Virus record (IMG/VR): IMGVR_UViG_3300025319_000005
Coordinates: 124,001 to 188,000 of that record
DNA: 64,000 nucleotides
Reading direction: 5' to 3' (one strand)
The position numbers and the translations under genes were made by a program. Shown here piece by piece: positions 48,934-64,000 of this stretch (position 1 is its first letter; each line of letters opens with the position of its first letter). The notes beneath the pieces were generated by a model. That model saw only the letters and a program-made list of their open reading frames with translations. It searched no databases and was not told where the DNA came from.

Positions 48934-48934
48934 A

Positions 48935-49621: not shown

Positions 49622-49678
49622 AATTCTAACTTATTTTAATGTAAATAGGTTAGAATTTTTTAATAAAGTAAATAGTTG

Positions 49679-49754
49679 AGGATAAGAAGAGAATTAAACT
49701 CCTGTTAAATATGTTTTGCAGACATATCCCGATTTCAACATTGGGTACTTATCC
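49679..49754 (-). tRNA. tRNA-Cys(GCA)
   Basis: GGATAAG/CTTATCC, CT-GCA-AA, U73, T loop TTTAATT. Confidence 0.8.
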
Positions 49755-49768
49755 TTGTAAAAATTAAA

Positions 49769-50038
49769 AAAGTAAAATCCTAAGTATAGCCGCGATTTTG
49801 TTCTATCTCATCATTTATCTGAAGGTATTGCTACCAACTGGAGACTTTAAACGTCTACCACGCACCTACCCGACTATCAACAACGTAAAGGTTCCCCGTC
49901 TACAGTCTGTTTGGCTTGCATCCTATGTTGCGGAAGTACATACGCTATTTGTTATAGCTTCTTCCTCCTTTTAAAAGATGTCGCGAACTTCCTCTCGATT
50001 TTAAGAATCGAGCGATGAGTCCTTCAGGATTTTACTTT
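49769..50038 (-). ncRNA. rnpB: RNase P RNA, compact A-type-like with reduced specificity domain
   Basis: P1 AAAGTAAAATCCT/AGGATTTTACTTT; CR-I GAGGAAGTTCGCGAC; GCAAGCCAAA; GGGTAGGTGC; AGATAAATGAT; CR-V ACAAAATCGCGGCTATA; P4 with bulged U. Confidence 0.88.
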
Positions 50039-50043
50039 TCTTG

Positions 50044-50115
50044 AGGCTCCACTGACAATCGATGTCAGGACTCAAATTTACAAGATTCGTGTTTTGCCAC
50101 TTAAACTACGGAGCC
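50044..50115 (-). tRNA. tRNA-Thr(TGT)
   Basis: 72-nt cloverleaf, CT-TGT-AA, T loop ATCGATT. Confidence 0.85.
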
Positions 50116-50131
50116 ATTATTTGTTCTTATG

Positions 50132-50205
50132 TGGAATCTACCGGCATTGAACCGGTCTCTCAGGCGTGCAAGGCAAGTGTTCTAAGCCAAATGAACTAAG
50201 ACCCC
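50132..50205 (-). tRNA. tRNA-Ala(TGC)
   Basis: G3:U70, CT-TGC-AC; anticodon stem has two mismatches. Confidence 0.85.
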
Positions 50206-50243
50206 AATTTAATTTGTTCAAAGTACAAATTATTAAAAACTTT

Positions 50244-50319
50244 TGGCGAGTATGACCGGTCCTGACCCGGCGACCTCCTCATAGACAGTGAGGCATTCTT
50301 CCAACTGAACTACACACTC
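50244..50319 (-). tRNA. tRNA-Asp(GTC)
   Basis: cloverleaf, CT-GTC-TA, G73, encoded CCA, T loop GTCAGGA. Confidence 0.9.
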
Positions 50320-50332
50320 ATTATTTTTTAAA

Positions 50333-50639
50333 AAAGTAAGACGCCATTTCGCTGATAGCGTTTTTTGTGTTCTGTTTAATGCGCCAAAGAACATCTGATT
50401 ATGTTCAGCATTTAGCGTTCATGCTTGGTTATTATAACATACTAACATTCCTAATATTGTCTGATTACCTATTTTGAGTTTGCATAGTAGGTTGATTTTT
50501 ATTTCCAGGGTAAAAATCAACAAACAAACCTAACGTCTGATAAACTTTATTTTTCATCCGGTAAACGTTTTGTACATTGTTTAGTTCATTAGGCTAAAAC
50601 AACACGTCTTTTTCACGGACAACATTAGTAACTTACTTT
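50333..50639 (-). ncRNA. unidentified ~307-nt structured RNA
   Basis: closing stem AAAGTAAG/CTTACTTT, perfect 11-bp hairpin GTTGATTTTTA/TAAAAATCAAC and further hairpins; no long ORF; lies between tRNAs; strand inferred from the operon. Confidence 0.65.
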
Positions 50640-50644
50640 TCTTG

Positions 50645-50718
50645 TAGTGCATCTGAGAATTGAACTCAGTACTTCCACGTTATCGGCGTGGCACTCTGGA
50701 CCGATGAGTTAATGCACT
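50645..50718 (-). tRNA. tRNA-Ile(GAT)
   Basis: cloverleaf, CC-GAT-AA (C33). Confidence 0.88.
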
Positions 50719-50732
50719 GTTTTTATTTAAAG

Positions 50733-50805
50733 TCTAGGTGGCCTGCTCCGACCAGGCGGTCTCCAGTTCCCAAAACTGGCGGATTTCCAACTTTCCCACA
50801 CCTAG
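50733..50805 (-). tRNA. tRNA-Pro(TGG)
   Basis: C1:G72, TT-TGG-GA, T loop GTCGGAG. Confidence 0.87.
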
Positions 50806-50842
50806 AAATTTTGTTTATCTTTCCAAACTGTCTTTTAATAAG

Positions 50843-50906
50843 AGTTCAAGCTCGGTTATCCACCGATTCGAAGGACTGCATTAGCCTTCTCTGCAGACAC
50901 TTGAAC
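50843..50906 (-). ncRNA. 64-nt tRNA-sized element lacking D and anticodon arms
   Basis: acceptor-like GTTCAAG/CTTGAAC, T-like hairpin TCGG-TGGATAA-CCGA, alternative central stems. Confidence 0.5.
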
Positions 50907-50908
50907 AT

Positions 50909-50984
50909 TGGAGCGAAAAACCAGGTTCAAACTGGCGACCCCCAGAGTGGAAATCTGGCGCTCTATCAACTGAGCTATTTTCGC
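50909..50984 (-). tRNA. tRNA-Gly(TCC)
   Basis: cloverleaf, TT-TCC-AC, U73, CCA. Confidence 0.9.
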
Positions 50985-51073
50985 TTATGTATATAATTCT
51001 CTCAGACCATATTACCAAGATTTACTTTGGACTCACCGTATTTTAAAAGTGAGCAGAATTGTATTTAATTAAA

Positions 51074-52021
51074 TTATTCTAATAATAATTCATCAATTGT
51101 TAAAATTGAATTTAAATTATCTATTGTTTTTTTAAATATCATTTTAACATTAATGTTGTTTTGTTCTAATACTAAACTCATTTTTGTTTTATCTATTATT
51201 GAATAATATCCTTTAGTTTCTATGTATAAGTTAAAATTTGGCAAATAAAAATCTGGCACATACGTTTTTTCAACACCTTCTTTAATATATTGAATATATA
51301 TTTTTCTAATCCACAATATTTTATTGTCATTTAACCATTGCGACATTTTTAATTCATATTTTCCTCTTAAAGAATATTCTTCACCAATAATATTTTTTTG
51401 TTTATAAAATTTCACATGTTTAAAATTGTTACTTATTTCATTTTCTTCTAACATCTTGGAGTGAGATTTGCTAATTTTCGATTTTTGTTCAGAAGAAAGT
51501 GGCTTTCCTAATTGGTGATGTATTCTCTTACCAGTAGCATACATTTCTTTTTGTTGCTCAGATGCTTTATTTACCCTATTATCAGTTTCCTTTGTAAGTC
51601 CTCTTGACCATCCCATTTTTGATTTAGTCTCTGCATTACTGTATTTTTTATTTTTATATTCAACTCCATCCGGTGTATGCATTTGAAATATATGACCACA
51701 TATACCAAGTTTGTGAAATATTAATTCGCAATGAGGACATTTATATTTATCTACATCAACTTTCCAAGATTCATCTACTGTTATTTGTTTTTTATTAACT
51801 GTATTACATTTATTATAATGCCTTTCAAAATTAGAAACAGAAATATTTTTATTACATTTATCACAACATTTTGTGTTTTTAGGTTTTCCAAGTAAAGAAA
51901 TACTTAAATTTTTTAATCTTTCTTTTAACTTTGGATTAGATTCACAATTTACTATATGAGCACCAAATTGTTGTGGGATCTCAAACTCAAAAGACTCTTT
52001 GCAATGCGGACAAGTTTTCAT
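51074..52021 (-). CDS. homing endonuclease-like protein (Zn fingers + PD-(D/E)xK)
   Basis: CPHC and CDKC fingers; YVPDFYLP..LYIETKGY. Confidence 0.8.
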   Translation of the reverse strand: MKTCPHCKESFEFEIPQQFGAHIVNCESNPKLKERLKNLSISLLGKPKNTKCCDKCNKNISVSNFERHYNKCNTVNKKQITVDESWKVDVDKYKCPHCELIFHKLGICGHIFQMHTPDGVEYKNKKYSNAETKSKMGWSRGLTKETDNRVNKASEQQKEMYATGKRIHHQLGKPLSSEQKSKISKSHSKMLEENEISNNFKHVKFYKQKNIIGEEYSLRGKYELKMSQWLNDNKILWIRKIYIQYIKEGVEKTYVPDFYLPNFNLYIETKGYYSIIDKTKMSLVLEQNNINVKMIFKKTIDNLNSILTIDELLLE

Positions 52022-52090
52022 ACTTTTTTATTATAAATAGTATAAAAAATTGCAGGTTAGAAAATTGTTAGCACGTTATTGTTTTTTGAG

Positions 52091-52173
52091 TGGGAGTTGA
52101 TGGAGACGAGCCACCCGAGTTTTAAAACAACCGATTTACAGTCGGTCCCGCTACCCCTACGGAATAAACTCCC
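52091..52173 (-). tRNA. tRNA-Tyr(GTA)
   Basis: CT-GTA-AA, long variable arm, T loop CTCGTCT. Confidence 0.87.
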
Positions 52174-52185
52174 ATTTTAATGTTG

Positions 52186-52257
52186 CACAGACGGTTATAA
52201 TCGAAATAACTACGTGTAGTTTTTGGAGAACTCACCGACACCAAGCCTGTCGTCTGT
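52186..52257 (-). tRNA. tRNA-Trp(CCA)
   Basis: CT-CCA-AA, G73, canonical T arm; weak D arm. Confidence 0.75.
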
Positions 52258-52296
52258 ATTTTATCTATTTTTTAAGCTGTAAGATAATTAGCTAAG

Positions 52297-52368
52297 TAGC
52301 GAAAACTGGAATCGAACCAATGTAGACACAGCTTATGAGACTGGTGGGAAACCAACATCCTTTTCGCA
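52297..52368 (-). tRNA. tRNA-Met(CAT), initiator-like
   Basis: 1:72 mismatch, CT-CAT-AA; weak D arm. Confidence 0.75.
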
Positions 52369-52381
52369 ATATATTTTTTTG

Positions 52382-52454
52382 TAGCCCCTGCCGGTCCTGA
52401 CCCGACGACTTCATTCATGTAAAAAATGCACTCTACCAACTGAGTTAAGGGGCT
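52382..52454 (-). tRNA. tRNA-Val(TAC)
   Basis: cloverleaf, TT-TAC-AT, T loop GTCAGGA. Confidence 0.88.
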
Positions 52455-52459
52455 ATTAG

Positions 52460-52533
52460 TAGCATATATCAGAATCAAACTGATGACCTTCCTCATATGA
52501 AAAGGACGCTCTAATCAACTGAGCTAATATGCT
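52460..52533 (-). tRNA. tRNA(CAT): elongator Met or Ile2
   Basis: cloverleaf, TT-CAT-AT; identity not resolvable from sequence. Confidence 0.85.
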
Positions 52534-52543
52534 ATTTAAAAAG

Positions 52544-52615
52544 AGCGGGTGATGAGGATTAAACTCACGGCCTCATCCTTGGCAAGGATGCGCTCTATCG
52601 CTGAGCTACACCCGC
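52544..52615 (-). tRNA. tRNA-Gly(GCC)
   Basis: cloverleaf, TT-GCC-AA, U73. Confidence 0.92.
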
Positions 52616-52691: not shown

Positions 52692-52727
52692 AAAAAACCC
52701 GAACCTTTTTTAAGTCCGGGTGTGTTA
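52692..52727 (-). terminator. attenuator terminator of tRNA operon 1
   Basis: ACCCGGAC/GTTCGGGT + U6; 5' arm overlaps the antiterminator partner TAACACACCC. Confidence 0.85.
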
Positions 52728-52760
52728 TGTTGTTTCCCTTTTAAGTTTTTATATCTTACT

Positions 52761-52889
52761 TCATGAAACAAAATGTTTTAACACACCCATATTATCGCGG
52801 CTATAATCGCCAGGGGTAATACACGCATACCCGACTGTCGGCATGACTGCCCAAATCGTTGTAATTGTTGTATGTGTTAAATTTTTCAT
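52761..52889 (-). CDS. attenuator leader peptide 1 (42 aa)
   Basis: MKNLTHTTITTIWAVMPTVGYACITPGDYSRDNMGVLKHFVS; between promoter and terminator upstream of tRNA operon 1. Confidence 0.85.
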   Translation of the reverse strand: MKNLTHTTITTIWAVMPTVGYACITPGDYSRDNMGVLKHFVS

Positions 52890-52916
52890 TGAAGATGTTT
52901 TCTTTTTAATTAAACT

Positions 52917-53002
52917 TAAATAGTATAAAAAATTATTTTCTCAAATATTTCTTTCGACCAATTATAACGCAAAGATATAATTAAAGTTTAATAAAAAGCA
53001 AA
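52917..53002 (-). promoter_or_regulatory. tandem promoters of tRNA operon 1
   Basis: TTTG-N21-TATCTTTG (52970-53002) and TATTTA (52917-52922). Confidence 0.75.
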
Positions 53003-53031
53003 TTTATTTTCATTTATTTTTTATTTAACTT

Positions 53032-53680: not shown

Positions 53681-53681
53681 T
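53638..53681. repeat. 22-nt perfect tandem duplication
   Basis: AAAGATAAACGAAACAAATGAT x2. Confidence 0.95.
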
Positions 53682-54795: not shown

Positions 54796-54799
54796 AAGC

Positions 54800-55000
54800 T
54801 TAAAACCCTTCTTTAGTAACTCCAGATGCTACGGCAGCTTCTGCGTTGGCTTTACTCATTAATAGACTCATCTTATGTCCATCTTTACTTTCGCCCTTTG
54901 CAATGTACCCACCCTTTTTAGTTAAGCTAATAACAGCATTAACCATTACTCCCTTTGATTTTGTCTTAAGACAATAAGCCTCTAATACTACTTTTTCCAT
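54800..55000 (-). CDS. small DUF5679-like protein (paralog of 53202-53405)
   Basis: YCLKTK..KGGYIAKGESKDGHKM..KANAEAAVASGV. Confidence 0.7.
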   Translation of the reverse strand: MEKVVLEAYCLKTKSKGVMVNAVISLTKKGGYIAKGESKDGHKMSLLMSKANAEAAVASGVTKEGF

Positions 55001-55038
55001 TTTTTTTGGTTTTATAGTAAATATTAAAAATTTTTATT

Positions 55039-55386
55039 TTAAGTCGGTGATGTTATTAATTGAAATTTAGTAGGATGCGACAATCTATAATCAACTTGTC
55101 TTTCATCAACATATTCTCGATAATTAACATAACCTTTAACATATGGAGTTACGCGAGCATCGAAAAAAATAACATCTCCGTTATTTAACGCTCCTAATTT
55201 CTCAAATCCTTTTGTTTTGTTAAACCACAAATGGTCAGTAACAATTTTATCAGACTTATCCTTAATATCTTTTAAGAGTATTGTTTCTACAGGATATCCA
55301 TGATAATTCTTCTTTGTTCCAAATTTCTCAAATATTCCACTAAATCTGTCCCGTATATTTTCTATTTTTTCTAAATCTTTTCTCAT
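55039..55386 (-). CDS. conserved phage hypothetical protein
   Basis: VTDHLWF..FDARV..YVKGY..DYRLSHPTK. Confidence 0.6.
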   Translation of the reverse strand: MRKDLEKIENIRDRFSGIFEKFGTKKNYHGYPVETILLKDIKDKSDKIVTDHLWFNKTKGFEKLGALNNGDVIFFDARVTPYVKGYVNYREYVDERQVDYRLSHPTKFQLITSPT

Positions 55387-55955
55387 TGATAAAACCCTTT
55401 TCTTTTTATATAATTAGCAACTTGCGGTGCTAAAAAATCTTTCACATCTCTATTTTCCTTTATCTCGTTTCGGATAAATGTGGAAGACATTTCAATTAAA
55501 TTAACATCAAACATTTTTACTTTTGGATGTAAAATTAGATTACCGCCATCGCTGGAGCTACGTGAATATACATAAATTTGATATTCTTCAAGTATTTTTT
55601 GATAATCTTTCCACTTGTGTAAGTTTTCTAAATTATCAGTTCCCATTATTATAACAAATTCATTTTCTTTAAATGTTTCTTTTAATAAATTGAGCGTATC
55701 TATAGTATACGAAGGTTTTGATAAATTAAATTCAATATCACTGGCTCTCATATGTTCATTATCAATTAATGCCATATTAACCATTTTTAACCTTTCTTTT
55801 TCTGATAGTAGAGAATTTTTATCCTTGAGAGGATTGTGAGGAGATATTATAAACCACACACATTCCAATTCGGTATGTTCAAGCATGTAAGACGCCAATA
55901 TTGTGTGACCGTTGTGGATTGGATTAAAACTACCGAAGAATAAACCTATTTTCAT
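55383..55955 (-). CDS. nadD: nicotinate-nucleotide adenylyltransferase
   Basis: FFGSFNPIHNGH, SYTIDTL, IMGTDN, WKDY, MSSTFIR; start reassigned to 55955. Confidence 0.93.
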   Translation of the reverse strand: MKIGLFFGSFNPIHNGHTILASYMLEHTELECVWFIISPHNPLKDKNSLLSEKERLKMVNMALIDNEHMRASDIEFNLSKPSYTIDTLNLLKETFKENEFVIIMGTDNLENLHKWKDYQKILEEYQIYVYSRSSSDGGNLILHPKVKMFDVNLIEMSSTFIRNEIKENRDVKDFLAPQVANYIKRKGFYQ

Positions 55956-56037
55956 ATGTGATATTATTAAACGAAGATAATCATTATAATGTTGCAACTA
56001 ACTTTTTTAAACTATTTATTGAAAAAAGAAATATAAA

Positions 56038-57411
56038 ATGAATAATAAAGAACTAAGAAAATCGATAAGAAGGATTTTAAAGGAAAATCTTGAAAATTCT
56101 GATTGGGTGAATGCCAGTGATGCTCAAAAAGCTGCAATGCAAGATATAGACTCAGAAGATGAATTTGAACACTTAGGAACTAATAGGTTTGAAAAAGATT
56201 TTGATGTTGAAGATTTTCTATATGATTTAGAAGCTCAAAAAAATATGTCTGAGCCATCTGTAAAAAGATTAGAAAAACAAATTGGGCAATTAAAAAGATT
56301 TGGAAAGGGTTCTTTGAATGAATTATCGCCAGAAATAAGACAATCCGCACTTAAAAAAGCTGTTGATTATATTGAACAACCTGGAGATACCTATCATAAA
56401 GACCCGCTCCAATATATTAAGAAAAAAAACCAAGCAAATTCATTTATTTCTCATGTTAATCCTGAGTTAAAAAAAGAAGCTATGGAAATAGCAAAAATGA
56501 TAGATGTAAATTGTGAAAGTCGTATAGAAAAAGAAGCGGTAGGAAGTACACTTGAACCAAATGTTGTATTATATTTTGGTCAAAACATTGCAGATTTAAG
56601 TAATCAAATACTTAAAATTGCCATTAAAAAAGATAATCATACATGGGAAACCAAAAAATTTATTCCTGAAAATATTCAAAGAAGATTGGCTAATTTTATA
56701 AAAAAGATTCAAACAAAAGAAATATCTAGTCCAGTTAAACAATTGAATGAGAGATTTCTTGGTGGATGGCATTATTTCGCAACTCCAGAAGGTAAAGAAG
56801 AATATATTAAAGACCTCGAGTCTAAAAAGATTAATGCAAAAGGAGAAGAATTAGAGCAAATTGAAAAAGAACTTAAAAAGTTAAAATCAATAAAACCAAA
56901 ATCCTTAAAAGAAGAAACATCAAAACTTGACAAGCCAAAAGATTCTGCAGGAAATTCAATATCATCCGGAGTGAGAGTTGAAGATTTAGAGTCGGGTAGT
57001 GCTGGACGAGTTGAGAGATTTGGTATTGACGACAAAGGACAATTAACAGTTCATGTTGCTTGGATAACAAAATATGGACAGATAGCTCCAAAGTCCATTG
57101 TTTATCCCAAAAATATAATTGTTAAAGATTCTGCAAAAAAGATAACAGACGAAGGAATTAAAGATACTTTAAAAAATATTTATAAAGAATTGAATCCTAT
57201 TGAAAAATGGAAACAAATGAAAGAAAATCGTAAAAAGCTCGAAAAAGAAGTTAGTGATTTACGAAGAGAAGTTTCTGAAAAGGAAAAAGAATTAGAAAAA
57301 ATAGTGAATAGTAATCATATTAAAGCTGATGTAAGTAATGATGTTGACGAAGGAATTGGAGCTGGATTATCACTTCCAATAAAAAAAGGAGCCGGAAGCA
57401 GATTTAAATAA
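56038..57411 (+). CDS. multi-module protein with shared leader
   Basis: MNNKELRKSIRRILKE; LNE/LNE/LKEE/VDE junctions; TATTTA at 56013-56018. Confidence 0.6.
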   Translation: MNNKELRKSIRRILKENLENSDWVNASDAQKAAMQDIDSEDEFEHLGTNRFEKDFDVEDFLYDLEAQKNMSEPSVKRLEKQIGQLKRFGKGSLNELSPEIRQSALKKAVDYIEQPGDTYHKDPLQYIKKKNQANSFISHVNPELKKEAMEIAKMIDVNCESRIEKEAVGSTLEPNVVLYFGQNIADLSNQILKIAIKKDNHTWETKKFIPENIQRRLANFIKKIQTKEISSPVKQLNERFLGGWHYFATPEGKEEYIKDLESKKINAKGEELEQIEKELKKLKSIKPKSLKEETSKLDKPKDSAGNSISSGVRVEDLESGSAGRVERFGIDDKGQLTVHVAWITKYGQIAPKSIVYPKNIIVKDSAKKITDEGIKDTLKNIYKELNPIEKWKQMKENRKKLEKEVSDLRREVSEKEKELEKIVNSNHIKADVSNDVDEGIGAGLSLPIKKGAGSRFK

Positions 57412-57418
57412 AACTATT

Positions 57419-58432
57419 TTGGAAAATAAGTTAAGAAAATATATTCAAAAAATCCTTCAAGAATCTTTAAATACAGAAGACATTCCTGAAGACATCCCCA
57501 TTAAAAAAGATTTAAAATTCACTGAGACCTCAAGAGGTTCGCATCATGGCCAGCAGGATTTAACAGCTTATGCCACAATAGAGGGAATAGTAGTTGGCTA
57601 TGTTGAATATTCTATATTTCAGAACGAAATCCACATAGAAATGATTGAAGTTGTTGAAGAACAAAAAAGACAAGGAATAGCAACAAAATTATTTCATTTT
57701 ATAAGACTTAAAAATTCTGGTATGAAAATTATTCCAGGATATTCAACCGAAGAAGGAAGTAAATTTTATAATGCTTATAAAAGCAAAAAACTAAAAGAAG
57801 ATATAAATGTTCCTATAAATGTTGGAGATACCGTTCTTGGTGGCCGTTTTAAAAATAAAAAAATTATTATTAAAGATATAGGAAAGTCAGATAAGGGCGA
57901 CATTACAATTAATGACAAGCCTCTTTTAAAAGTTAGGATTCCAAAGAAAATAAATGAAGAAAAATTGACATGTTTATATATTCATGGTTTAGGAGCTGAA
58001 ATATCTGATGATATTAAAAATTCTCTTTCCAAATACAATCTCATATATCCCAAAATAAACTACGACAAAACAACAAAACCATATTATCAATGTTTAGAAA
58101 TATTAAATAAAGATAAGGTGGATTTTATAATAGGTCATTCTATAGGTGGAGTTATGGGTTATTATTTAGCTAAAGAAACAAATATTCCAGCTTTATTATT
58201 ATGTCCGGCATTTGGAGATGAATATAAAGTTCTCACAAGTAAGTTAGTTAAAGATAATAACCCAAAAATAGTTGTTATCATAGGAAAAAAAGATGATGAA
58301 GTTGATAATAAAAAAGTTAAATCCACTTTAGAAAATCAACCCAATTGTGTTATTAAAGAATTAAATATCGGACATGATATTACAGAAAAAAATCTGATTT
58401 TATTTGCTGATGGTTTTGTTGAAAATTTATAA
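57419..58432 (+). CDS. leader + GNAT + small beta module + alpha/beta hydrolase
   Basis: TTG start; KLRKYIQKILQE; KRQGIATKL; LKE and INEE junctions; GHSIGG nucleophile elbow, terminal GHD. Confidence 0.7.
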   Translation: MENKLRKYIQKILQESLNTEDIPEDIPIKKDLKFTETSRGSHHGQQDLTAYATIEGIVVGYVEYSIFQNEIHIEMIEVVEEQKRQGIATKLFHFIRLKNSGMKIIPGYSTEEGSKFYNAYKSKKLKEDINVPINVGDTVLGGRFKNKKIIIKDIGKSDKGDITINDKPLLKVRIPKKINEEKLTCLYIHGLGAEISDDIKNSLSKYNLIYPKINYDKTTKPYYQCLEILNKDKVDFIIGHSIGGVMGYYLAKETNIPALLLCPAFGDEYKVLTSKLVKDNNPKIVVIIGKKDDEVDNKKVKSTLENQPNCVIKELNIGHDITEKNLILFADGFVENL

Positions 58433-58459
58433 TTGAAATTATTATTTTTTAATATAAAG

Positions 58460-58532
58460 TGCTTCCAGTTGGACTTGAACCAACGACCCGAAAATTAAGA
58501 ATTTCCTACTCTACCATCTGAGCTATGAAAGC
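58460..58532 (-). tRNA. tRNA-Lys(CTT)
   Basis: cloverleaf, TT-CTT-AA. Confidence 0.92.
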
Positions 58533-58620
58533 AATAATTTATAATGTATTATAGATATATGTTGAGTAAAATCCACAGAATGTTCTATTTTATGGATTGT
58601 GCTCAACAAATATGTAATTG

Positions 58621-58694
58621 TGTGTCCGACAAGATTTGAACTTGTGACCTCCGCATTAAAAGTGCGGTATTCTAACCAGCTGAATTACGAACAC
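58621..58694 (-). tRNA. tRNA-Lys(TTT)
   Basis: cloverleaf, CT-TTT-AA. Confidence 0.92.
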
Positions 58695-58698
58695 ATAG

Positions 58699-58785
58699 TG
58701 TACCCAGAAAGATTCGAACTTTCAACGGCCTTTCGGCTCCCCACAGGGTAAAAACCTGTTGCTCTACCAATTGAGCCATGGGTAC
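58699..58785 (-). tRNA. tRNA with Lys(TTT) anticodon and 19-nt variable arm
   Basis: ACAGG-TTTTTAC-CCTGT; variable region GGGGAGCCGAAAGGCCGTT. Confidence 0.85.
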
Positions 58786-58789
58786 AAAT

Positions 58790-58826
58790 AAAAAAGCCTG
58801 AATCTACACAGAGACTCAGGCTTTTT
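58790..58826 (-). terminator. attenuator terminator upstream of the three tRNA-Lys genes
   Basis: AAAAAGCCTGAGTC/GATTCAGGCTTTTT + U run. Confidence 0.85.
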
Positions 58827-58841
58827 GGACTTATAAAAAAG

Positions 58842-58907
58842 TCAATGAGCTATCGTCCCCGGAGACCAGGGTTTCTTAGATTTTTTTATTTTGATTATTG
58901 TTAACAT
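58842..58907 (-). CDS. attenuator leader peptide 3 (21 aa, Lys-rich)
   Basis: MLTIIKIKKSKKPWSPGTIAH; stop lies inside the antiterminator 5' arm. Confidence 0.8.
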   Translation of the reverse strand: MLTIIKIKKSKKPWSPGTIAH

Positions 58908-59018
58908 TTTGTTTATTTTTTTAAATTAAAAAGAGCCCACACTCAACTGGTGGCTAATTTTTATGAACGAGTATTACCCAAGTTCTGTCATCCACTATGA
59001 CAAATTTCTATTGTTATT

Positions 59019-59371
59019 TTAACCTTGAATATCTTGACATTCCGTGATGTTATAGGTCTTTATAAAATCCTTACCATCAGTTATTATTAAATCCAAGTTA
59101 CTTGAATAGTACCCGTTATTAGAACCGTGTCCAGCTATTTTTACAGAATGTCCTTGTATTGGAATTAATTCAATTCCGTAATCAGGAATTCTTTTGAAGA
59201 AATCATCATTTGTTAAATCAAATTCTAATCCTTCAAATCAGCGATTGTTAAATCATCTAATGTTAATGAATGTGATTCACAACAATCTGATTCATGATTT
59301 GAATATAACTTTACTTCATTTTCAAATTCAATTGCATCTGAGTCAACTTTTACTACTTTTAATTTGTTCAT
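59019..59371 (-). pseudogene. frameshifted conserved hypothetical gene
   Basis: MNKLKVVKV..DCCE..AD then a frame change near 59235; one extra T gives DFEGLEFDL..NNGYYS and a 117-aa product. Confidence 0.65.
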
Positions 59372-59387
59372 TTTATTTATGTTTTTG

Positions 59388-59461
59388 GGTGCTATATCGG
59401 CTACGACCCGATTACCTTCTGTACCACAAACAGACACTCTACCAATTGAGCTAATAACACC
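59388..59461 (-). tRNA. tRNA-His(GTG)
   Basis: G-1:C73, TT-GTG-GT, T loop GTCGTAG. Confidence 0.9.
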
Positions 59462-59474
59462 ATATTAAATTTGT

Positions 59475-60245
59475 TTAAAATACAAATTTTAAGACTTTAA
59501 TATTATTTACTTTTTCACTATATCCAAAATTTCTAATTTCATCATGTATTTCTATGTGACAATTTGCACAAACCATAATACATTTATCAACTTCTACTTT
59601 TAATCTTTCAAAACCATAAGATTTGCCACCAATAGTAAAATCTTTTTCACTTGGATTTGTATGATGAAATTGTAAAACTGATGTTGATTTATTATATCCA
59701 CAACATTCACATTTCCATCCTTTATATTCAATTAATCTAATTTTACTTCTTTTTCTCCAATCTATAACAGCCTGACTTTTGGTTTTAGTTTTTTGTCTTT
59801 TTTTATTTGTTTTAATCAAATCATCAGAAATGTAATTTCTAATTGTTGTCCTATCTACCTTAAAATAAGCGGCTGTTTTTCTTAAAGACTTACTTTCTAT
59901 ATAAAAATTAACAACTTCTATTTCAATAAGTTCTTTTTTCTTAAATGTACCACTTGATTTATTTAATCCATACAAATTACATATTTTAATTAACTTATCT
60001 TCTCCAATGTCCAAAATTGACCTTATTTCGTCATAGCTTTTCAATTCTCTTCTGTAAGCAATTATTTTGTTTATAACTTCATCAGTTATTCCAATTAAAA
60101 AACTGTTTCTTACTCCGCCAAGTCCAACATTATTTATGTGATAAGACACAGTGCTTTTTGAACACTTTAATTGTTCAACTATTTCTTTTATAGTTGAGCC
60201 TTTTTCTCTTAAAGAGATAATTTTATTTTTCAAACCTTTATCCAT
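59475..60245 (-). CDS. HNH homing endonuclease with HTH repeats (paralog of 15297-15992)
   Basis: CECCG..LQFHHTNPSEKDF..KCIMVCANCHIEIH; start reassigned to 60245. Confidence 0.87.
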   Translation of the reverse strand: MDKGLKNKIISLREKGSTIKEIVEQLKCSKSTVSYHINNVGLGGVRNSFLIGITDEVINKIIAYRRELKSYDEIRSILDIGEDKLIKICNLYGLNKSSGTFKKKELIEIEVVNFYIESKSLRKTAAYFKVDRTTIRNYISDDLIKTNKKRQKTKTKSQAVIDWRKRSKIRLIEYKGWKCECCGYNKSTSVLQFHHTNPSEKDFTIGGKSYGFERLKVEVDKCIMVCANCHIEIHDEIRNFGYSEKVNNIKVLKFVF

Positions 60246-60316
60246 ATTATTAACTTTATTTGTTAATAAATATGGGATAAAATTCAAAAAAACAAAATTT
60301 ATTTCAAAGAACGTTG

Positions 60317-60388
60317 CGGACCCGCCTGGACTTGAACCAGAAAACGCAGATTAACAATCTGAAGTGATACCAATTTCACCACAGGTCC
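60317..60388 (-). tRNA. tRNA-Asn(GTT)
   Basis: cloverleaf, TT-GTT-AA, G73. Confidence 0.88.
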
Positions 60389-60394
60389 CAATAT

Positions 60395-60715
60395 TTATTT
60401 TTTAATTTCTTCTTTAGTAATAGAATCACCAACCTCTATTACTTTGCCAAAAACTTTTTTTGTCCAACCATTTATTCCTCCTTTATTATTTCCTATTAAA
60501 CAACCTTTTTGTGCATTAATTGCTTTTACTAAATGTGTGTAGAAATTGCCGTGCACTTTCGCATAGACTATATCTCCTACTTTAACTTCATCTATTGTAA
60601 TTGGGGCAATTTTATGTTCTTGTCCCGACTTAATTAAAGGAACCATTGAGTTTCCTTTTTCACTGGTGACGAAAGTCTCACCGTTTTGTAATCTTTCTAA
60701 TTTATAATTTCTCAT
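60395..60715 (-). CDS. S24/S26 peptidase-like protein
   Basis: GNSMVPLI..VGDIVY..HLV. Confidence 0.6.
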   Translation of the reverse strand: MRNYKLERLQNGETFVTSEKGNSMVPLIKSGQEHKIAPITIDEVKVGDIVYAKVHGNFYTHLVKAINAQKGCLIGNNKGGINGWTKKVFGKVIEVGDSITKEEIKK

Positions 60716-60731
60716 TTTTTATTATTTGTTT

Positions 60732-60820
60732 TGGCGGAAAACGGGCAAATCGAATACCATTCAAATTAACGAACCTCTCGCTTAGCAGGCGGAGACAACT
60801 CCCTGGTTGTTTCGTTTTCC
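60732..60820 (-). tRNA. tRNA-Ser(GCT)
   Basis: CT-GCT-AA, long variable arm, G73, CCA. Confidence 0.82.
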
Positions 60821-60847
60821 ATTTATTATTTCAAAGAACATTTTTTG

Positions 60848-60933
60848 CAGAGGCTAAGAGAGTTCAACTCTTACAACCTTTTCAAGTCCTAGCTATTTTC
60901 AAGATAGTGTACCTCCGTCAACTGGGAGCCTCT
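60848..60933 (-). tRNA. tRNA-Ser(TGA)
   Basis: AGAGGCT/AGCCTCT, CT-TGA-AA, long variable arm, G73, T loop TTGAACT. Confidence 0.8.
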
Positions 60934-61012
60934 ATGTTTGCCTATTAACTCTATCACTCACCTAAACGGTGGATTACAGAACTTCGGCAGGATTTTATTC
61001 CTGTTCAGTTAG

Positions 61013-61089
61013 TGGAGATTGCCAGAATTGAACTGGCGTTAATTTCACGGTTCTTCAAACCGCAGCTAGACCGTCTCAGCTAAATCTCC
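61013..61089 (-). tRNA. tRNA-Phe(GAA)
   Basis: cloverleaf, TT-GAA-GA, 9-nt variable region. Confidence 0.88.
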
Positions 61090-61114
61090 ATTATTTTCAA
61101 AAAACGTTATAAAA

Positions 61115-61150
61115 CAAAAAACCCGAACTCTTTTGTAAGTCCGGGTGTGT
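61115..61150 (-). terminator. attenuator terminator of tRNA operon 2
   Basis: ACCCGGACT/AGTTCGGGT + U6; 5' arm overlaps ACACACCCG. Confidence 0.85.
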
Positions 61151-61174
61151 TTATGTTGTTTTAATTTTAATCTT

Positions 61175-61264
61175 TTACGATTCAAAAGGACAATACACAC
61201 CCGCTCGGCTTTTATTACTAAAACTCGATTTGTTAAAATGCTTATGTGTATTATTTGTTGTCAT
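61175..61264 (-). CDS. attenuator leader peptide 2 (29 aa)
   Basis: MTTNNTHKHFNKSSFSNKSRAGVYCPFES. Confidence 0.85.
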   Translation of the reverse strand: MTTNNTHKHFNKSSFSNKSRAGVYCPFES

Positions 61265-61284
61265 TTTGTATTCTTAATATTCTT

Positions 61285-61368
61285 TAAATAGTATAAAAAA
61301 TTATTTTTCTAAAAATTCTTATTATCAATTATAACGCAAAGATATAATTAAAGTTTCAAAAAAGCAAA
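61285..61368 (-). promoter_or_regulatory. tandem promoters of tRNA operon 2
   Basis: TTTG-N20-TATCTTTG (61337-61368) and TATTTA (61285-61290); homologous to 52917-53002. Confidence 0.75.
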
Positions 61369-61404
61369 TTTATTTTGATTTATTTTTTATTTCATTAAAA
61401 AAGG

Positions 61405-61687
61405 TATCTCGGGTTTTCTGATAATTTGCCGTTGTCATACTGATTAGAGTCGAACTAATCGTGTTGCGTTTCTACATTTCTACAATTTACATTTTTACAA
61501 AGTCGGCCTTTTTGATTCTATTGCCTTTTCCATAAGGATGTCTTGTGAGACTTGTTTTTTGTATTTATCTCCTTTCGAAGTTAATTACTATGAACGTTTT
61601 TTAGAAACTTTCTTGAAACTATCTGGTGTATCGTCACCTGAACCTATCCGGTAAATGTTGCCGGAACCATCCATACTGGCCCGAGAA
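61405..61687 (-). ncRNA. unidentified ~280-nt structured RNA downstream of the DIP1984-like gene
   Basis: closing stem TCTCGGG/CCCGAGA; T-arm mimic GATTAG-TTCGACT-CTAATC; four TGTA-A-rich repeats. Confidence 0.6.
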
Positions 61688-61692
61688 TGTTT

Positions 61693-62229
61693 TTATTCAG
61701 AACTCATAAGAGATTCTAAATCTACATGAGAAAAAGAAAGCTCTATTGTTTTTTGATTTAATATTTCAATTTCATTTTGAGTGGTTCTGTACTTTGTTTT
61801 GAAGTGTGAAATTTTACTTTTCACTTCCGTAGAAGTAACAGCCGGAATATATTCAACTTTTATTGATTTTCTTGTTCCGTTTCCAAGGTTCTCAAATTTT
61901 GTTGTTTTTGTTGGTTTAGTGCGAGCTAATGCATTTTCATAAATTGATAATAGCAATTTGTTATTATGCATAGAGCGAACTTTATTGTCTACTTGATTTT
62001 CTTTGTTAAAAGAAGAAATCTTTGAATTTATTTCTTCAGAAAATCCAAGGGCTTTTTCCAAACGAGAAACAGCTTCTCCAAATTTTTTAATATCTGCCTC
62101 ATCAGTAATGACCTGGTCATCTTCTTTAGTTGAACCAAGTGGAGCTCTAAAAGTTTCACTTTGAATAGATTGAACTGATTTAGAAATTTCATTTTTAAGT
62201 CTTAGTGCTTCTGATACAGTAATGTTCAT
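61693..62229 (-). CDS. DIP1984-like coiled-coil protein
   Basis: VSEALRLKNEI..INSKISSFN..TQNEIEILN pattern. Confidence 0.55.
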   Translation of the reverse strand: MNITVSEALRLKNEISKSVQSIQSETFRAPLGSTKEDDQVITDEADIKKFGEAVSRLEKALGFSEEINSKISSFNKENQVDNKVRSMHNNKLLLSIYENALARTKPTKTTKFENLGNGTRKSIKVEYIPAVTSTEVKSKISHFKTKYRTTQNEIEILNQKTIELSFSHVDLESLMSSE

Positions 62230-62295
62230 GATGATATATTTTAATTATTTATTGTTTGGGATACAAATGTAATAATAAATTTAATACAAACAAAT

Positions 62296-62445
62296 TTATT
62301 TACATTTTTCTTCTTTAGATAACTCTTCTATAATAACAGAAAGTTGTCCACATGCGGCACCGTTGTTAATTTCTGATTGAGTTGCCACTGCTACGGCATA
62401 TTCAAAACCGCTTTCTTCTAATTGTTTTTTTATTTCTTCGTTCAT
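62296..62445 (-). CDS. 49-aa peptide matching the C-terminus of RlmN-like radical SAM enzymes (not in ORF track)
   Basis: MNEEIKKQLEESGFEYAVAVATQSEINNGAACGQLSVIIEELSKEEKCK contains AACGQL. Confidence 0.7.
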   Translation of the reverse strand: MNEEIKKQLEESGFEYAVAVATQSEINNGAACGQLSVIIEELSKEEKCK

Positions 62446-62457
62446 TTTTTTGTTTTT

Positions 62458-63345
62458 TTAAATTAAAGTTAAACCGTTAAATCCAAATTTTAAATTCTTA
62501 CCATTAAATACAACTAAATTAGAAGGATGTTCTGGCTTTAAAACGCATCTTGAGTATGCTTTTACAACCTCTATATCTAATTTTTCTGGTATATATAAAT
62601 AGTTATTACATTTACAACTATCAAAATAATTCCATTGTTTTGATAATAACATTCTTTTCGTTTTAAAATCAAAACTCGAAAAGTCTATAAAATTTTCTTT
62701 ACAAAAGTCATTAATTTTCATCAAAGAAACAAATCCAACATCATATATTTTTAAAAAATTTGCAAATTCTAAAAATTCGTATATTTCTTTCTCAGAATCA
62801 ATATTGTTTTTAATTAGATTACAACTTAAATGTAGTAAGTTTTTGTTAATTAATTTTTCTTGAGCTCTTTTTAACTCTACGGTAGATAATGCCTTAAAAC
62901 CTAAAATTTCATTATTCTTAACATCTTCATAGTGATGTCTACTAATAGAAATGCTATCAAAATTATTTATTTCGCCATTCTCGAATAAATTTAATAATTG
63001 AAATCCATTTGTGTTCATTACAAGAAATGTTTCCGGAAAGTAAAATCGAATTAAATCAATTATTTTATAAAGTTTTTTTAGTTCTAAAGTTGGTTCACCT
63101 CCAGTGATTGATATTTTTTTAACTTCAATTTCTTCTTTTAATGAAATTAAAGTTTGTTCAAATTTTTCAAAATCAAAAGCGTTTGCTACATTTTTAAACT
63201 CACAAAAAGAACAATTTGCGTTACATCCATTTAATTGAACATATAAATTAATATACGGTTCCGTTATTGGAACCATTTCACAGCCATTTAATGAACAGTT
63301 ATGAGATTTTAAATCTATAGTTTTCCCAAAAATAGTTGTTTGCAT
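62458..63345 (-). CDS. radical SAM protein
   Basis: CNANCSFC, ITGGEP, MNTNG. Confidence 0.9.
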   Translation of the reverse strand: MQTTIFGKTIDLKSHNCSLNGCEMVPITEPYINLYVQLNGCNANCSFCEFKNVANAFDFEKFEQTLISLKEEIEVKKISITGGEPTLELKKLYKIIDLIRFYFPETFLVMNTNGFQLLNLFENGEINNFDSISISRHHYEDVKNNEILGFKALSTVELKRAQEKLINKNLLHLSCNLIKNNIDSEKEIYEFLEFANFLKIYDVGFVSLMKINDFCKENFIDFSSFDFKTKRMLLSKQWNYFDSCKCNNYLYIPEKLDIEVVKAYSRCVLKPEHPSNLVVFNGKNLKFGFNGLTLI

Positions 63346-63347
63346 TT

Positions 63348-63659
63348 TTAACAGTGGCTAAAATTACTTGTTTTACCTCCTCTACCACACGGATCTACAT
63401 CAGAAGAATTAGAAGAAGATTTTCTCTTTAAGTCTTCAATTTCTTTTTTTAATTTTTCCAACTCTAAACATTTTTTATCTAATTCAATTTGTGTTTTACA
63501 CTTTAATTTGAATTCTTTCAAAACTGCTTCTGAAATTTGCCCAGTATCAACAAGTGTTTTTTCTGCTGCTTCAACAAAAGTTTCCATATCGTTTGGGTGA
63601 GTTTTAGAAAAAAATTTATAATATTCTTCCAAAAATGCTATTTCGTCTTTTTTTGCCAT
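63348..63659 (-). CDS. hypothetical protein
   Basis: 103-aa ORF. Confidence 0.55.
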   Translation of the reverse strand: MAKKDEIAFLEEYYKFFSKTHPNDMETFVEAAEKTLVDTGQISEAVLKEFKLKCKTQIELDKKCLELEKLKKEIEDLKRKSSSNSSDVDPCGRGGKTSNFSHC

Positions 63660-63666
63660 GTTGTTT

Positions 63667-64000
63667 TTATTTTAAATTTACACCTTCAATAACTCCTTCT
63701 CCAAGATGGTTATTATTAGAAACTTCATTTGGATTTATAGGACTTAATTTAATGAAAAAATTGTCCTTATCAAAATTTTCTTTTAATTTATCAATATTAA
63801 AATCACTTTCATCAACTAAAGTCATGTTTAAAGTAGTTTTTAAGTTGCTGAAAGTTTTTATTTTTCCAAGTTCTGAAATTGTCATTTTCTTTTTGTATGG
63901 AATTAGCCAATTTCTTTTTTCATCTTCCAGTGAATGCAAAGATACTTGAAGAGTGATATTATCTTTTATCCAACTAAAATCAGCATCTTTAATTCCAATT
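63667..64000 (-). CDS. RlmN-like radical SAM protein, 3' part (5' end outside the window)
   Basis: frame stays open to the window edge: IGIKDADFSWIKDNITLQVSLHSL..RNWLIP..IKLSPINPN; ends without ACGQL. Confidence 0.6.
   Translation of the reverse strand, partial: IGIKDADFSWIKDNITLQVSLHSLEDEKRNWLIPYKKKMTISELGKIKTFSNLKTTLNMTLVDESDFNIDKLKENFDKDNFFIKLSPINPNEVSNNNHLGEGVIEGVNLK

Follow-up and report, generated by a model that had tools for sequence, protein, structure and literature searches.

Leader-peptide attenuators and related systems

Leader-peptide transcription attenuators are known from amino-acid biosynthetic operons, such as trp, his, leu and pheA of E. coli and Salmonella (general model as in PMC1183508), in which a short translated leader ORF carries a run of regulatory codons, mutually exclusive 1:2, 2:3 and 3:4 pairings can form, an intrinsic terminator precedes the first regulated gene, and a ribosome stalled at the regulatory codons favours the antiterminator. 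Multivalent attenuators, such as those of ilvGMEDA and ilvBN (Leu/Val/Ile codons) and of thr (Thr/Ile codons), appear to integrate the supply of two or three amino acids, with a set of codons that mirrors what the products of the operon provide. The pheST attenuator of E. coli, with its pheM leader, probably controls a component of the decoding machinery, a chromosomally encoded aminoacyl-tRNA synthetase, and so closes a feedback loop on the decoding of a single amino acid. T-box riboswitches, in turn, sense the state of specific tRNAs and switch between terminator and antiterminator before genes of the translation apparatus, but they bind tRNA directly and need no translation.

The locus analysed here shares with the amino-acid biosynthetic attenuators the short ORF, the regulatory codons, the 2:3 and 3:4 pairings and the terminator, but the downstream genes are tRNAs and homing endonucleases, in some relatives together with the RNA-repair proteins RtcB or Ro60, instead of biosynthetic enzymes, and the element is carried by phages. 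The control codons are a mixture of 5 to 11 different amino acids rather than a run of one, region 2 lies inside the ORF, 4-26 nt upstream of the stop, and the control codons fill the loop of the predicted 1:2 hairpin. Compared with the ilv and thr leaders, up to 11 amino acids are represented, each tied to an individual tRNA gene downstream, and the set changes from array to array within one genome. No prior description of such an element was found in literature searches.

Anatomy of a predicted attenuator upstream of phage tRNA genes

The window, a stretch of 64,000 nucleotides corresponding to positions 124,001 to 188,000 of the IMG/VR record IMGVR_UViG_3300025319_000005, contains two homologous leaders, both on the minus strand. 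The preliminary description had proposed that the element at 61264-61115 (leader 2) is an attenuator homologous to a first one, with control codons exchanged to match its own tRNA operon; the sequence features are confirmed, and this interpretation is supported. The leader 2 ORF, at 61264..61175, has 29 codons plus TAA and translates to MTTNNTHKHFNKSSFSNKSRAGVYCPFES. Region 1 (AAUACACAU, codons 5-7) is at 61252..61244, region 2 (GGGUGUGUAUU, that is GGGUGUGU followed by AUU) is at 61202..61192, and region 3 (ACACACCC) is at 61150..61143, with its last four bases being the first four of the terminator stem. The intrinsic terminator, ACCCGGAC-loop-GUUCGGGU, is at 61146..61121 and is followed by UUUUUG (to 61115), 25 nt before tRNA-Phe, and it was found independently by a terminator scan. 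The minimum free energy structure of the leader shows the 1:2 hairpin plus the 3:4 terminator, with z = -4.8 against shuffles. The core of region 2 (61202..61195) pairs with region 3 with a duplex energy of -17.9 kcal/mol, and ACCC is shared with the terminator. The 1:2 duplex energy is -15.4 kcal/mol against -9.4 for shuffles (fraction 0.025), although support for this helix is modest, being marginal for leader 1 (0.07) and not significant for many relatives; mononucleotide shuffles are a weak test in this case, because any A/C-rich segment pairs with the G/U-rich region 2.

Upstream of the ORF, at 61337..61368 (-), there is a promoter-like site composed of TTTG (-33), a 20-nt spacer and TATCTTTG (-7, TAnnTTTG), which resembles the probable consensus of Bacteroides and Flavobacterium promoters and is thus considered of Bacteroidota type. 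Ten such sites were found in the window against 5.0 +/- 2.1 expected, and one sits before each leader. An overlapping block of 30 nt, 61326-61355, is identical to 52959-52988 before leader 1, with 2 matches in the window and 0 expected. Leader 1 (52697..53002, minus strand) has the same architecture, with a promoter at 53002..52970, an ORF at 52889..52761 (MKNLTHTTITTIWAVMPTVGYACITPGDYSRDNMGVLKHFVS), region 1 at 52880..52871, the region 2 core at 52788..52781, region 3 at 52725..52718, and the terminator at 52721..52697, and its minimum free energy structure also contains the 1:2 pairing.

Residues 7-19 of leader 2 (61208..61246) are 13 consecutive codons, CAU AAG CAU UUU AAC AAA UCG AGU UUU AGU AAU AAA AGC (H K H F N K S S F S N K S), which use only His, Lys, Phe, Asn and Ser, with both Lys codons and both Ser boxes being used. 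In a six-frame scan of the whole window this is the longest such run, but only narrowly, the next ones in this AT-rich sequence having 12 and 11 residues, while the run of 23 residues in leader 1 (residues 7-29), which uses exactly the 11 isotypes of the other array, is unrivalled, with none other of 14 or more.

The tRNA arrays

ARAGORN at default settings and Rfam confirm tRNA-Phe(GAA) at 61012..61089, the first gene after the terminator, tRNA-Asn(GUU) at 60316..60388, tRNA-His(GUG) at 59387..59460, and two tRNA-Lys(UUU) and one tRNA-Lys(CUU) at 58459..58785, all on the minus strand. The two Ser tRNAs of the preliminary description are weak calls. Ser(GCU), at 60733..60821 (-), is divergent and appears only at a relaxed ARAGORN threshold, though with a good cloverleaf and an encoded CCA. 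The candidate Ser(UGA), at 60848..60934 (-), is a type-II tRNA-like sequence that relaxed ARAGORN calls Ile(aat); it has a 7-bp acceptor stem, a T arm and a long variable arm, its CUUGAAA loop can be read as anticodon UGA, and it is syntenic with a Ser(tga) in the related contig L142 (L numbers denote loci recovered in the searches described below). The Rfam tRNA model detects neither Ser candidate, even at E up to 10 over 60700-61020.

The three Lys tRNAs lie immediately behind a separate Lys-rich leader ORF (58907..58842, MLTIIKIKKSKKPWSPGTIAH) and a strong terminator (58826..58791), a feature absent from the preliminary description. This arrangement is conserved before 5 tRNA-Lys in L009 and in L201. 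Folding with a masked ribosome revealed no antiterminator for this Lys leader, as the terminator always forms. Two of the five isotypes' worth of evidence for leader 2 therefore rests on weakly called or separately controlled genes.

Array 1, at 49678..52615 (-), comprises Gly(GCC), Met, Val, a CAU-anticodon tRNA, Trp, Tyr, an endonuclease ORF, Gly(UCC), Pro, Ile, Asp, Ala, Thr, an RNase P-like RNA and Cys. A search of eight large window ORFs against PHROGs gave almost nothing.

Distribution of the scaffold in viral and metagenomic contigs

Three collections were searched with the terminator half of the element only (ACACACCCGRA..YCGGGTTTTTT), a pattern that contains no leader sequence, which gave 47 unique hits and 25 distinct leaders from viral, metagenomic and MAG contigs. 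All 27 unique hits with a same-strand tRNA within 1.5 kb downstream have a match of at least 7/8 to GGGUGUGU 15-120 nt upstream, although this arm was not part of the search pattern. Of the 20 hits without such a tRNA, 17 match at 6/8 or less, while the other 3 are a contig-end truncation, a near-duplicate leader and a case with an intervening gene, all of them family members. Every hit near tRNAs that has enough upstream sequence carries an ATG ORF of 17-46 residues whose stop lies 4-26 nt after region 2 and 16-35 nt before region 3, and the peptide sequences diverge freely while the RNA arms stay fixed. An ORF homologous to that of leader 2 (MRTTKSHNHFNSSTFSNKSRLGVNCPCLI) lies before Phe-Phe-Ser-Ser-Ser-Asn-Asn-His in L142. 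The Thr codon of the L142 leader could not be linked to the tRNA-Thr(GGU) at the start of L009, since the two loci come from one contig but do not overlap and their adjacency is unproven. The ORFs between the L005 leader and its first tRNA have no Pfam match. In contrast to the terminator-based patterns, which were specific, scanning viral contigs for the hairpin GGGTGTGT-N-ACACACCC, a pattern that is its own reverse complement, returned over 110 unrelated hairpins.

BLAST of both leader regions against 50,697 phage records found only homing-endonuclease and tRNA matches, and none of these isolates carries the element. In the 212-kb source contig the scaffold occurs only twice, as far as exact patterns could be scanned outside the window. 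The expectation of the preliminary description that a further operon with Leu/Gln/Glu tRNAs would carry a leader rich in these residues is fulfilled in related phages, where leaders rich in Arg/His/Gln/Leu/Pro/Ser/Gly precede His-Gln-Pro-Arg-Ala-Ser-Met-Gly-Leu arrays (L139/L148, L151, L177, L178). In MAG contigs, the same scaffold precedes tRNAs plus the RtcB ligase (L191) or Ro60/TROVE plus 18 tRNAs (L188), which fits a response to tRNA trouble.

The terminator keeps pairing through CG/UA/AU/GC exchanges. RNAalifold on 20 family members keeps the stem, with compensatory changes in 3 pairs, and in an anchored pair count 0 of 1000 shuffles reach the observed pairing. The antiterminator has an essentially invariant 8-bp core, which gives no covariation evidence, and region 3 was fixed by the search pattern; the extension of this helix shows modest covariation, with more double changes than shuffles do (14 against 8.4 +/- 2.4, with 8 of 500 shuffles reaching it). 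By eye, an ACAYAU-like motif recurs at about nt +7 to +16 of most of the leader ORFs, and region 1/region 2 changes from UACACAU/GUGUGUA in the window to UAGACAU/GUGUCUA in L139, one compensatory C-G to G-C exchange.

Correspondence between leader codons and tRNA arrays

The composition of the leaders tracks the arrays downstream of them. In leader 1, 25/32 residues are cognate against 0.44 expected and 11/11 isotypes are represented, in leader 2, 15/19 are cognate against 0.33 expected and 5/5 isotypes are represented, and in L178, 23/24 are cognate. The two window leaders partition the amino acids as the arrays do, with 0.78 and 0.79 of residues cognate to their own array and 0.16 and 0.16 when the arrays are swapped. 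When arrays were permuted among 9 distinct leader types, the observed score was 6.25 against 2.75 +/- 0.64, with 0 of 200,000 permutations reaching it, and 7 of 9 leaders fit their own array best. Many family members are homologous, however, and the per-leader p-values are not independent. In the ORF frame, 72% of residues are cognate and 97.5% of array isotypes are covered, against 38-51% and 64-69% in the five other frames, which usually contain stops in the control segment. At the codon level, 342 of 399 isotype-matching codons are readable by the anticodons of the array under strict wobble, and most of the rest are NNY codons in four-codon boxes served by U34 tRNAs. Some control-zone residues have no cognate tRNA in the detected array, for example Asn and Glu in L007 and several residues in L169 and L184.

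The signal is also confined in position. The cognate fraction is at background (about 0.35) at codons 2-5 and after region 2, but mostly 0.8-1.0 at 5-16 codons before region 2. Folding of the RNA 3' of a masked ribosome predicts the antiterminator only for A-site codons 7-17 in leader 2, where the cognate run is 7-19, and 6-30 in leader 1, where it is 7-29. The family-wide odds ratio is 2.4, though the sequences are not independent, and in several relatives (L007, L153, L182, L005) equilibrium folding keeps the terminator wherever the ribosome is placed, so a kinetic argument is needed there.

Proposed mechanism and alternative explanations

These observations support the reading of the element as a ribosome-mediated transcription attenuator that reports decoding capacity for the tRNAs of its own array, belonging to a family that is widespread in phages of Bacteroidota-like hosts, with an estimated probability of about 0.8; translation of the leader, stalling and regulated read-through are inferred from sequence without expression data. 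In the proposed mechanism, transcription starts at the Bacteroidota-type promoter and the 29-codon leader is translated. If decoding is fast, the ribosome runs through region 2 towards the stop codon, and behind it, or with no ribosome at all, region 2 would pair with region 1, leaving region 3 to form the terminator with region 4, so that transcription ends before tRNA-Phe. If the ribosome stalls at codons 7-17, because tRNAs able to decode His, Lys, Phe, Asn or Ser codons are scarce, uncharged or damaged, it would sit in the loop of the 1:2 hairpin, with region 2 then free to pair with region 3, the terminator unable to form, and RNA polymerase reading into the tRNA genes. Because the control codons are those read by the tRNAs of that very array, each array would be expressed on demand and would shut itself off once its products restore decoding, a negative feedback loop on decoding capacity.

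An unlikely alternative is that the attenuator reports general translation status, so that any slowing of ribosomes, or loss of coupling between transcription and translation, would open the tRNA operon, with the codon composition fine-tuning the response or being partly historical. The architecture would indeed respond to any stall in the loop between regions 1 and 2, some leaders sample 17-20 different amino acids and precede the general RNA-repair genes RtcB and Ro60, and several control-zone residues lack a cognate tRNA in the array. Nevertheless, the two leaders of one genome use disjoint amino-acid sets that match their own arrays, the match survives permutation, and array isotypes are represented far more completely in the ORF frame than in the other frames, none of which a general sensor needs. 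It is still more improbable that the ORF is a small protein-coding gene, or a non-translated spacer, followed by an ordinary leaky terminator that merely insulates or doses the tRNA operon, with the resemblance between peptide and tRNA set being coincidence or a by-product of phage codon usage. Phage tRNA sets may generally correlate with phage codon usage, runs of 11-12 F/S/N/K-rich residues occur by chance in this window, and expression data are lacking, but genome-wide codon usage cannot explain why two leaders of one genome split the amino acids as the two arrays do, nor why the enrichment is confined to the ORF frame and to the segment between regions 1 and 2, and an ordinary terminator does not need a conserved complementary GGGUGUGU arm inside an upstream ORF. 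Direct, T-box-like sensing of tRNAs without translation is very unlikely, even though the output is tRNA-related and the codon-like triplets match the anticodons of the array, since no Rfam T-box or other cis-regulatory family reaches E of 1 or better over 48000-64000, apart from chance-level hits, the leader has a conserved ATG, an open frame and a stop codon at a constrained distance from region 2, up to 23 consecutive in-frame triplets are a poor fit to a single specifier loop, and the signal is frame-specific relative to the ATG.

Implications for the biology of phage tRNAs

Leader-peptide attenuation would be extended to non-coding RNA genes as the regulated output, to viruses, and to highly multiplexed inputs of 5-11 amino acids. 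In practice, the composition of such a leader predicts the content of the downstream tRNA array, which can help to annotate divergent phage tRNAs, and the scaffold could also serve as a compact, reprogrammable sensor of codon-specific translation stress.

A more tentative possibility is that the leaders are programmable sensors of tRNA abundance and integrity, not of amino-acid supply, and that each phage tRNA array, and in some contigs an RtcB or Ro60 RNA-repair module, would be switched on only when the cell can no longer decode exactly the codons that the array can rescue, as could happen after attack by host anticodon nucleases or after phage-induced loss of host tRNAs. The system would then be a closed-loop counter-defence and homeostasis circuit, and would give direct genomic evidence for why large phages carry tRNAs. 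Phage tRNAs have been proposed to counter host tRNA depletion (PMC10264068), and rescue from PARIS by tRNA-Lys has been reported (PMC11464382), which gives a reason why a phage would want tRNAs specifically when host tRNAs fail; Lys tRNAs, a known nuclease target, have a dedicated Lys-rich leader here, although the link between this attenuator and host defence is an inference.

Why phages carry tRNA genes has been debated for decades, the main ideas being codon compensation and replacement of tRNAs destroyed during infection (PMC10264068). A leader that is written in the codons of its own array suggests that the phage probably makes its tRNAs only when ribosomes struggle to read those codons, and says something about what the phage itself is set up to measure, namely failure to decode them.

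Organization of the leader elements

The feature lies on the minus strand and, reading from 61450 down to 58300, starts with a promoter-like TTTG-N20-TATCTTTG at 61368..61337, followed by an A-rich untranslated stretch and a 29-codon ORF at 61264..61175, MTTNNTHKHFNKSSFSNKSRAGVYCPFES. After a 24-nt spacer, ACACACCC (region 3) at 61150..61143 overlaps a terminator hairpin, ACCCGGAC/GUUCGGGU, at 61146..61121, which is followed by UUUUUG, and tRNA-Phe begins 25 nt later. Inside the ORF, AAUACACAU (region 1, codons 5-7) is complementary to GUGUGUAUU, and GGGUGUGU (region 2, codons 21-24) is complementary to ACACACCC. The minimum-energy fold shows the 1:2 hairpin plus the terminator, with z = -4.8, and the anatomy given in the preliminary description is thus correct.

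A second element, at 53002..52697 (leader 1), has a 30-nt promoter block identical to that of the first (2 matches, 0 expected). It also shares the 5' leader, region 3 and the terminator, but carries a different ORF, MKNLTHTTITTIWAVMPTVGYACITPGDYSRDNMGVLKHFVS. Between the leader 1 terminator and tRNA-Gly, at 52616-52696 on the minus strand, lies a conserved block (AGTCGAGCAATGACTTAAAAGTTTGCA...TTGACATATTG) that is shared with related phages (loci L004, L006 and L009) and absent after leader 2, and which could be a second promoter or a processing signal. In addition, a conserved hairpin (UAUUAUUGCCGGCGAUUAUAGCCGCGAUAAUA in the type-A relatives L006, L009 and L162, weaker in the window) is found just 5' of region 2, at 52790-52830 on the minus strand. 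It encodes the conserved ...GDYSRDN... residues, which are not cognate to the array, and may be a polymerase pause hairpin.

Content of the tRNA arrays

ARAGORN at default settings and Rfam agree on 16 tRNAs. Relaxed ARAGORN adds well-formed cloverleaves for divergent tRNAs on the minus strand, namely a CAU-anticodon tRNA (52297-52369; Rfam 25 bits), Trp (52186-52258) and Tyr (52091-52174; Rfam 23 bits) in array 1, and Ser(GCU) in array 2. A His-like tRNA at 48855-48934 (minus strand; Rfam 34.6 bits, above the gathering score) is also missed at default settings. The sequence at 60848-60934, assigned to Ser(UGA) in the preliminary description, has tRNA-like features, such as a 7-bp acceptor stem, a T arm and a long variable arm. 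Relaxed ARAGORN calls it Ile(aat), but it can be read with a CUUGAAA anticodon loop and is syntenic with a Ser(tga) in a related contig. Nevertheless, the tRNA model of Rfam finds neither Ser candidate, so the Ser tRNAs are plausible but weak.

Array 1 therefore carries Gly, Met, Val, Trp, Tyr, Pro, Ile, Asp, Ala, Thr and Cys, and residues 7-29 of leader 1 use exactly these 11 amino acids and no others. Array 2 carries Phe, Ser (tentatively), Asn, His and Lys, and residues 7-19 of leader 2 use exactly these five. In a six-frame scan of the window, the leader 1 run of 23 residues has no rival of 14 or more, while the leader 2 run of 13 is the longest of its kind but only just, with the next at 12 and 11. 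Leader 2 taken alone would therefore not be compelling, but the pair, and above all the family, is.

The three Lys tRNAs, listed in the preliminary description with the other tRNAs of operon 2, are not simply part of it. A 21-codon ORF at 58907..58842 (MLTIIKIKKSKKPWSPGTIAH) and a strong terminator at 58826..58791 lie directly before them, and the same arrangement precedes five tRNA-Lys in two other phages. This third, different leader (window 58791-58907, minus strand; L009:1266-1400; L201:about 4260-4390) consists of a 21-22-codon ORF with five Lys codons, a small conserved hairpin and a strong terminator, directly before 3-5 tRNA-Lys genes in three phages. No antiterminator was found for it by masked-ribosome folding.

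RNase P RNA-like sequences of about 240-260 nt lie inside the tRNA arrays, at 49771-50032 on the minus strand of the window and in two other loci (L007:5431-5689 and L161:7370-7608). Rfam RF00010 scores 39 and 44 bits (E about 1e-10) and RF00373 scores 29 bits, all far below the gathering scores. In the window and in L161 the sequence sits between tRNA-Thr and tRNA-Cys, and it may be a reduced phage-encoded RNase P RNA. The ORFs interspersed among the tRNAs, at 59475-60287, 51074-52021, 48935-49621 and 60395-60715, all on the minus strand, look like homing endonucleases (HTH/NUMOD1, phage endonuclease I-like, and HNH), and a fourth is a small S24-peptidase-like protein, as is typical of phage tRNA regions. 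Neighbouring genes, at 48395-48850 (plus), 55383-55997 (minus), 45586-46527 (plus) and 62458-63345 (minus), include a weak LigT-like 2H phosphoesterase hit (E 9e-4, below the cut-off), a cytidylyltransferase-like protein that is also next to the leaders in L006 and L178, a C5 DNA methylase, and a radical SAM protein. Most large ORFs of the window have no PHROG match.

A family of leaders recovered with the terminator alone

The source is a 212,632-bp viral contig, IMGVR_UViG_3300025319_000005, also recorded as Ga0209520_10000002. Viral contigs, metagenome contigs and one genome per prokaryotic species were scanned with the terminator half only (ACACACCCGRA-N8-20-YCGGGTTTTTT and a looser form), that is, without using the leader, and 47 unique sites were obtained. 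All 27 sites with a same-strand tRNA within 1.5 kb downstream also carry a match of at least 7/8 to GGGUGUGU 15-120 nt upstream. Of the 20 without such a tRNA, 17 match at 6/8 or less, and the other three are a contig-end truncation, a near-duplicate leader and a case with an intervening gene, all of them family members. Moreover, every tRNA-linked site with enough upstream sequence has an ATG ORF of 17-46 residues, whose stop lies 4-26 nt after region 2 and 16-35 nt before region 3.

This search yields 25 distinct leader peptides, which come from contigs of 2 to 519 kb, including Bacteroidia, Bacteroidota and Flavobacteriales-type MAG contigs. The Bacteroidota-type promoter and the absence of a Shine-Dalgarno sequence, features probably linked to this phylum, point to the same host phylum. 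The further leader predicted in the preliminary description, rich in Leu, Gln and Glu and preceding tRNAs of those isotypes, was not found in this genome with exact patterns, but leaders of that type exist in related phages. In one leader type (L005:8360-8490, also L128, L164 and L167), the ATG ORF is only 18 codons (MSHDDNKSGFKRVCYDVS) and the region-1-like ACACAU lies upstream of the ATG, in frame with a TTG; with the TTG start, all 8 isotypes of the array would be represented instead of 6. In this locus, about 890 nt containing an ORF with no Pfam match separate the terminator from the first tRNA.

Correspondence between leaders and arrays

The composition of the leaders tracks that of their arrays, as seen at several of the loci recovered in the search. 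In L178, the leader MLMTSRHMAPAQTLQGQLHISRPGRMGV... precedes Gln, His, Pro, Ala, Ser, Met, Gly, Leu, Thr and Arg tRNAs, and 23 of 24 residues are cognate. In L139/L148, ...RHMRMHQLQGSRPAGRSGV... precedes His, Gln, Pro, three Arg, Ala, Ser, Met, Gly and Leu tRNAs. The leader of L007, ...TYRNIEPTITGTCPAYGW..., precedes Ala, Tyr, Gly, Trp, Pro, Ile, Arg, Thr and Cys, whereas that of L131, ...TYKNIRPTATGICPAYRW..., precedes the same tRNAs as L007 plus tRNA-Lys(CUU), and has AAG where L007 has CGC. In L145, ...YQISAAPSADYPYGMADYGTG... precedes Gln, Asp, Gly, Ala, Tyr, Met and Pro, and in L182, which lies on a GC-rich contig, ...GTGTFGAVVQPWAGTWTA... precedes Thr, Gly, Trp, Ala and Pro.

Across 19 leaders with reasonably complete arrays, 97.5% of array isotypes are represented in the control segment and 72% of its residues are cognate, while in the five other reading frames of the same DNA the figures are 64-69% and 38-51%, respectively. 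Permuting arrays among nine distinct leader types gives a score of 2.75 +/- 0.64 against 6.25 observed; none of 200,000 permutations reach it, and seven of nine leaders fit their own array best. Many leaders are homologous and the individual p-values are thus not independent, so that the permutation across types and the frame control are the fairer tests. Within the window, each leader scores 0.78 or 0.79 on its own array and 0.16 on the other. At the codon level, 342 of 399 isotype-matching codons are readable by the array's anticodons under strict wobble, and most exceptions are NNY codons in four-codon boxes served by U34 tRNAs.

Position of the control codons and RNA structure

The enrichment sits where the proposed mechanism needs it. 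When the leaders are aligned on region 2, the cognate fraction is mostly 0.8-1.0 from 16 to 5 codons upstream, falls to the background value of 0.35 after region 2, and is also at background at codons 2-5. A ribosome was modelled by removing everything up to 14 nt past the first base of the A-site codon and folding the remaining RNA. For leader 2, the antiterminator is the minimum-energy state only for A-site codons 7-17, apart from codon 9, and the terminator forms for codons 2-6, when region 1 is still free, and for 18-30, when region 2 is covered. For leader 1, the predicted antitermination window is codons 6-30. These windows coincide with the cognate runs at 7-19 and 7-29. Family-wide the association has an odds ratio of 2.4, although in some relatives equilibrium folding always prefers the terminator, so co-transcriptional kinetics would have to matter there.

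The terminator is kept through CG, UA, AU and GC exchanges at its inner pairs; RNAalifold finds 3 pairs with double changes, and 0 of 1000 partner shuffles reach the observed pairing. The 8-bp core of the antiterminator is essentially invariant and so gives no covariation evidence, but its extension shows 14 double-change cells against 8.4 +/- 2.4 in shuffles, a value reached by 8 of 500. The 1:2 helix is the weakest part. By eye, an ACAYAU-like motif recurs at codons 5-7 in most leader types, even where Thr, His or Tyr are not in the array, and L139 changes UACACAU/GUGUGUA to UAGACAU/GUGUCUA.

Proposed mechanism and biological role

Full-text literature searches found nothing describing a leader peptide or attenuator before tRNA genes, and no cultured phage in the reference collection carries the element. 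Rfam finds no T-box family in the region, so the element is unlikely to be a T-box. The element has the structure of a leader-peptide attenuator, with the 1:2 helix as its least supported part, but departs from that family in the class of regulated gene, in the multiplexed codon set, and in being viral.

The mechanism proposed, in which translation of the leader, stalling and read-through are inferred from the sequence, is classical ribosome-mediated attenuation (general model in PMC1183508), with the control codons in the loop of the 1:2 hairpin. A ribosome stalled there prevents 1:2 pairing and leaves region 2 free to capture region 3, while a ribosome that runs on covers or passes region 2, and the terminator forms. 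What is new is both the output and the input, since the regulated genes are tRNAs and the control codons are a one-to-one sample of the isotypes in that array, 5 to 11 of them.

The physiological trigger may be amino-acid starvation, loss of host tRNAs during infection, or cleavage by anticodon nucleases, among which the sequence cannot distinguish, but two observations lean towards tRNA trouble. First, in Bacteroidia and Bacteroidota MAG contigs the same scaffold precedes RNA-repair genes. In L191 (4656-7672) the order is tRNA-Phe, tRNA-Cys, an HNH gene and the RtcB ligase (Pfam E 3.5e-84), and in L188 (1239-3124) a Ro60/TROVE protein (E 4e-33) is followed by 18 tRNAs; their leaders use 17-20 different amino acids. 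Second, the Lys tRNAs have a dedicated Lys-rich leader, and tRNA-Lys is the target of PrrC and PARIS (PMC10264068, PMC11464382). The logical consequence of the proposed mechanism is a negative feedback on decoding capacity, in which the array is transcribed when its codons are read slowly and is shut off by its own products.
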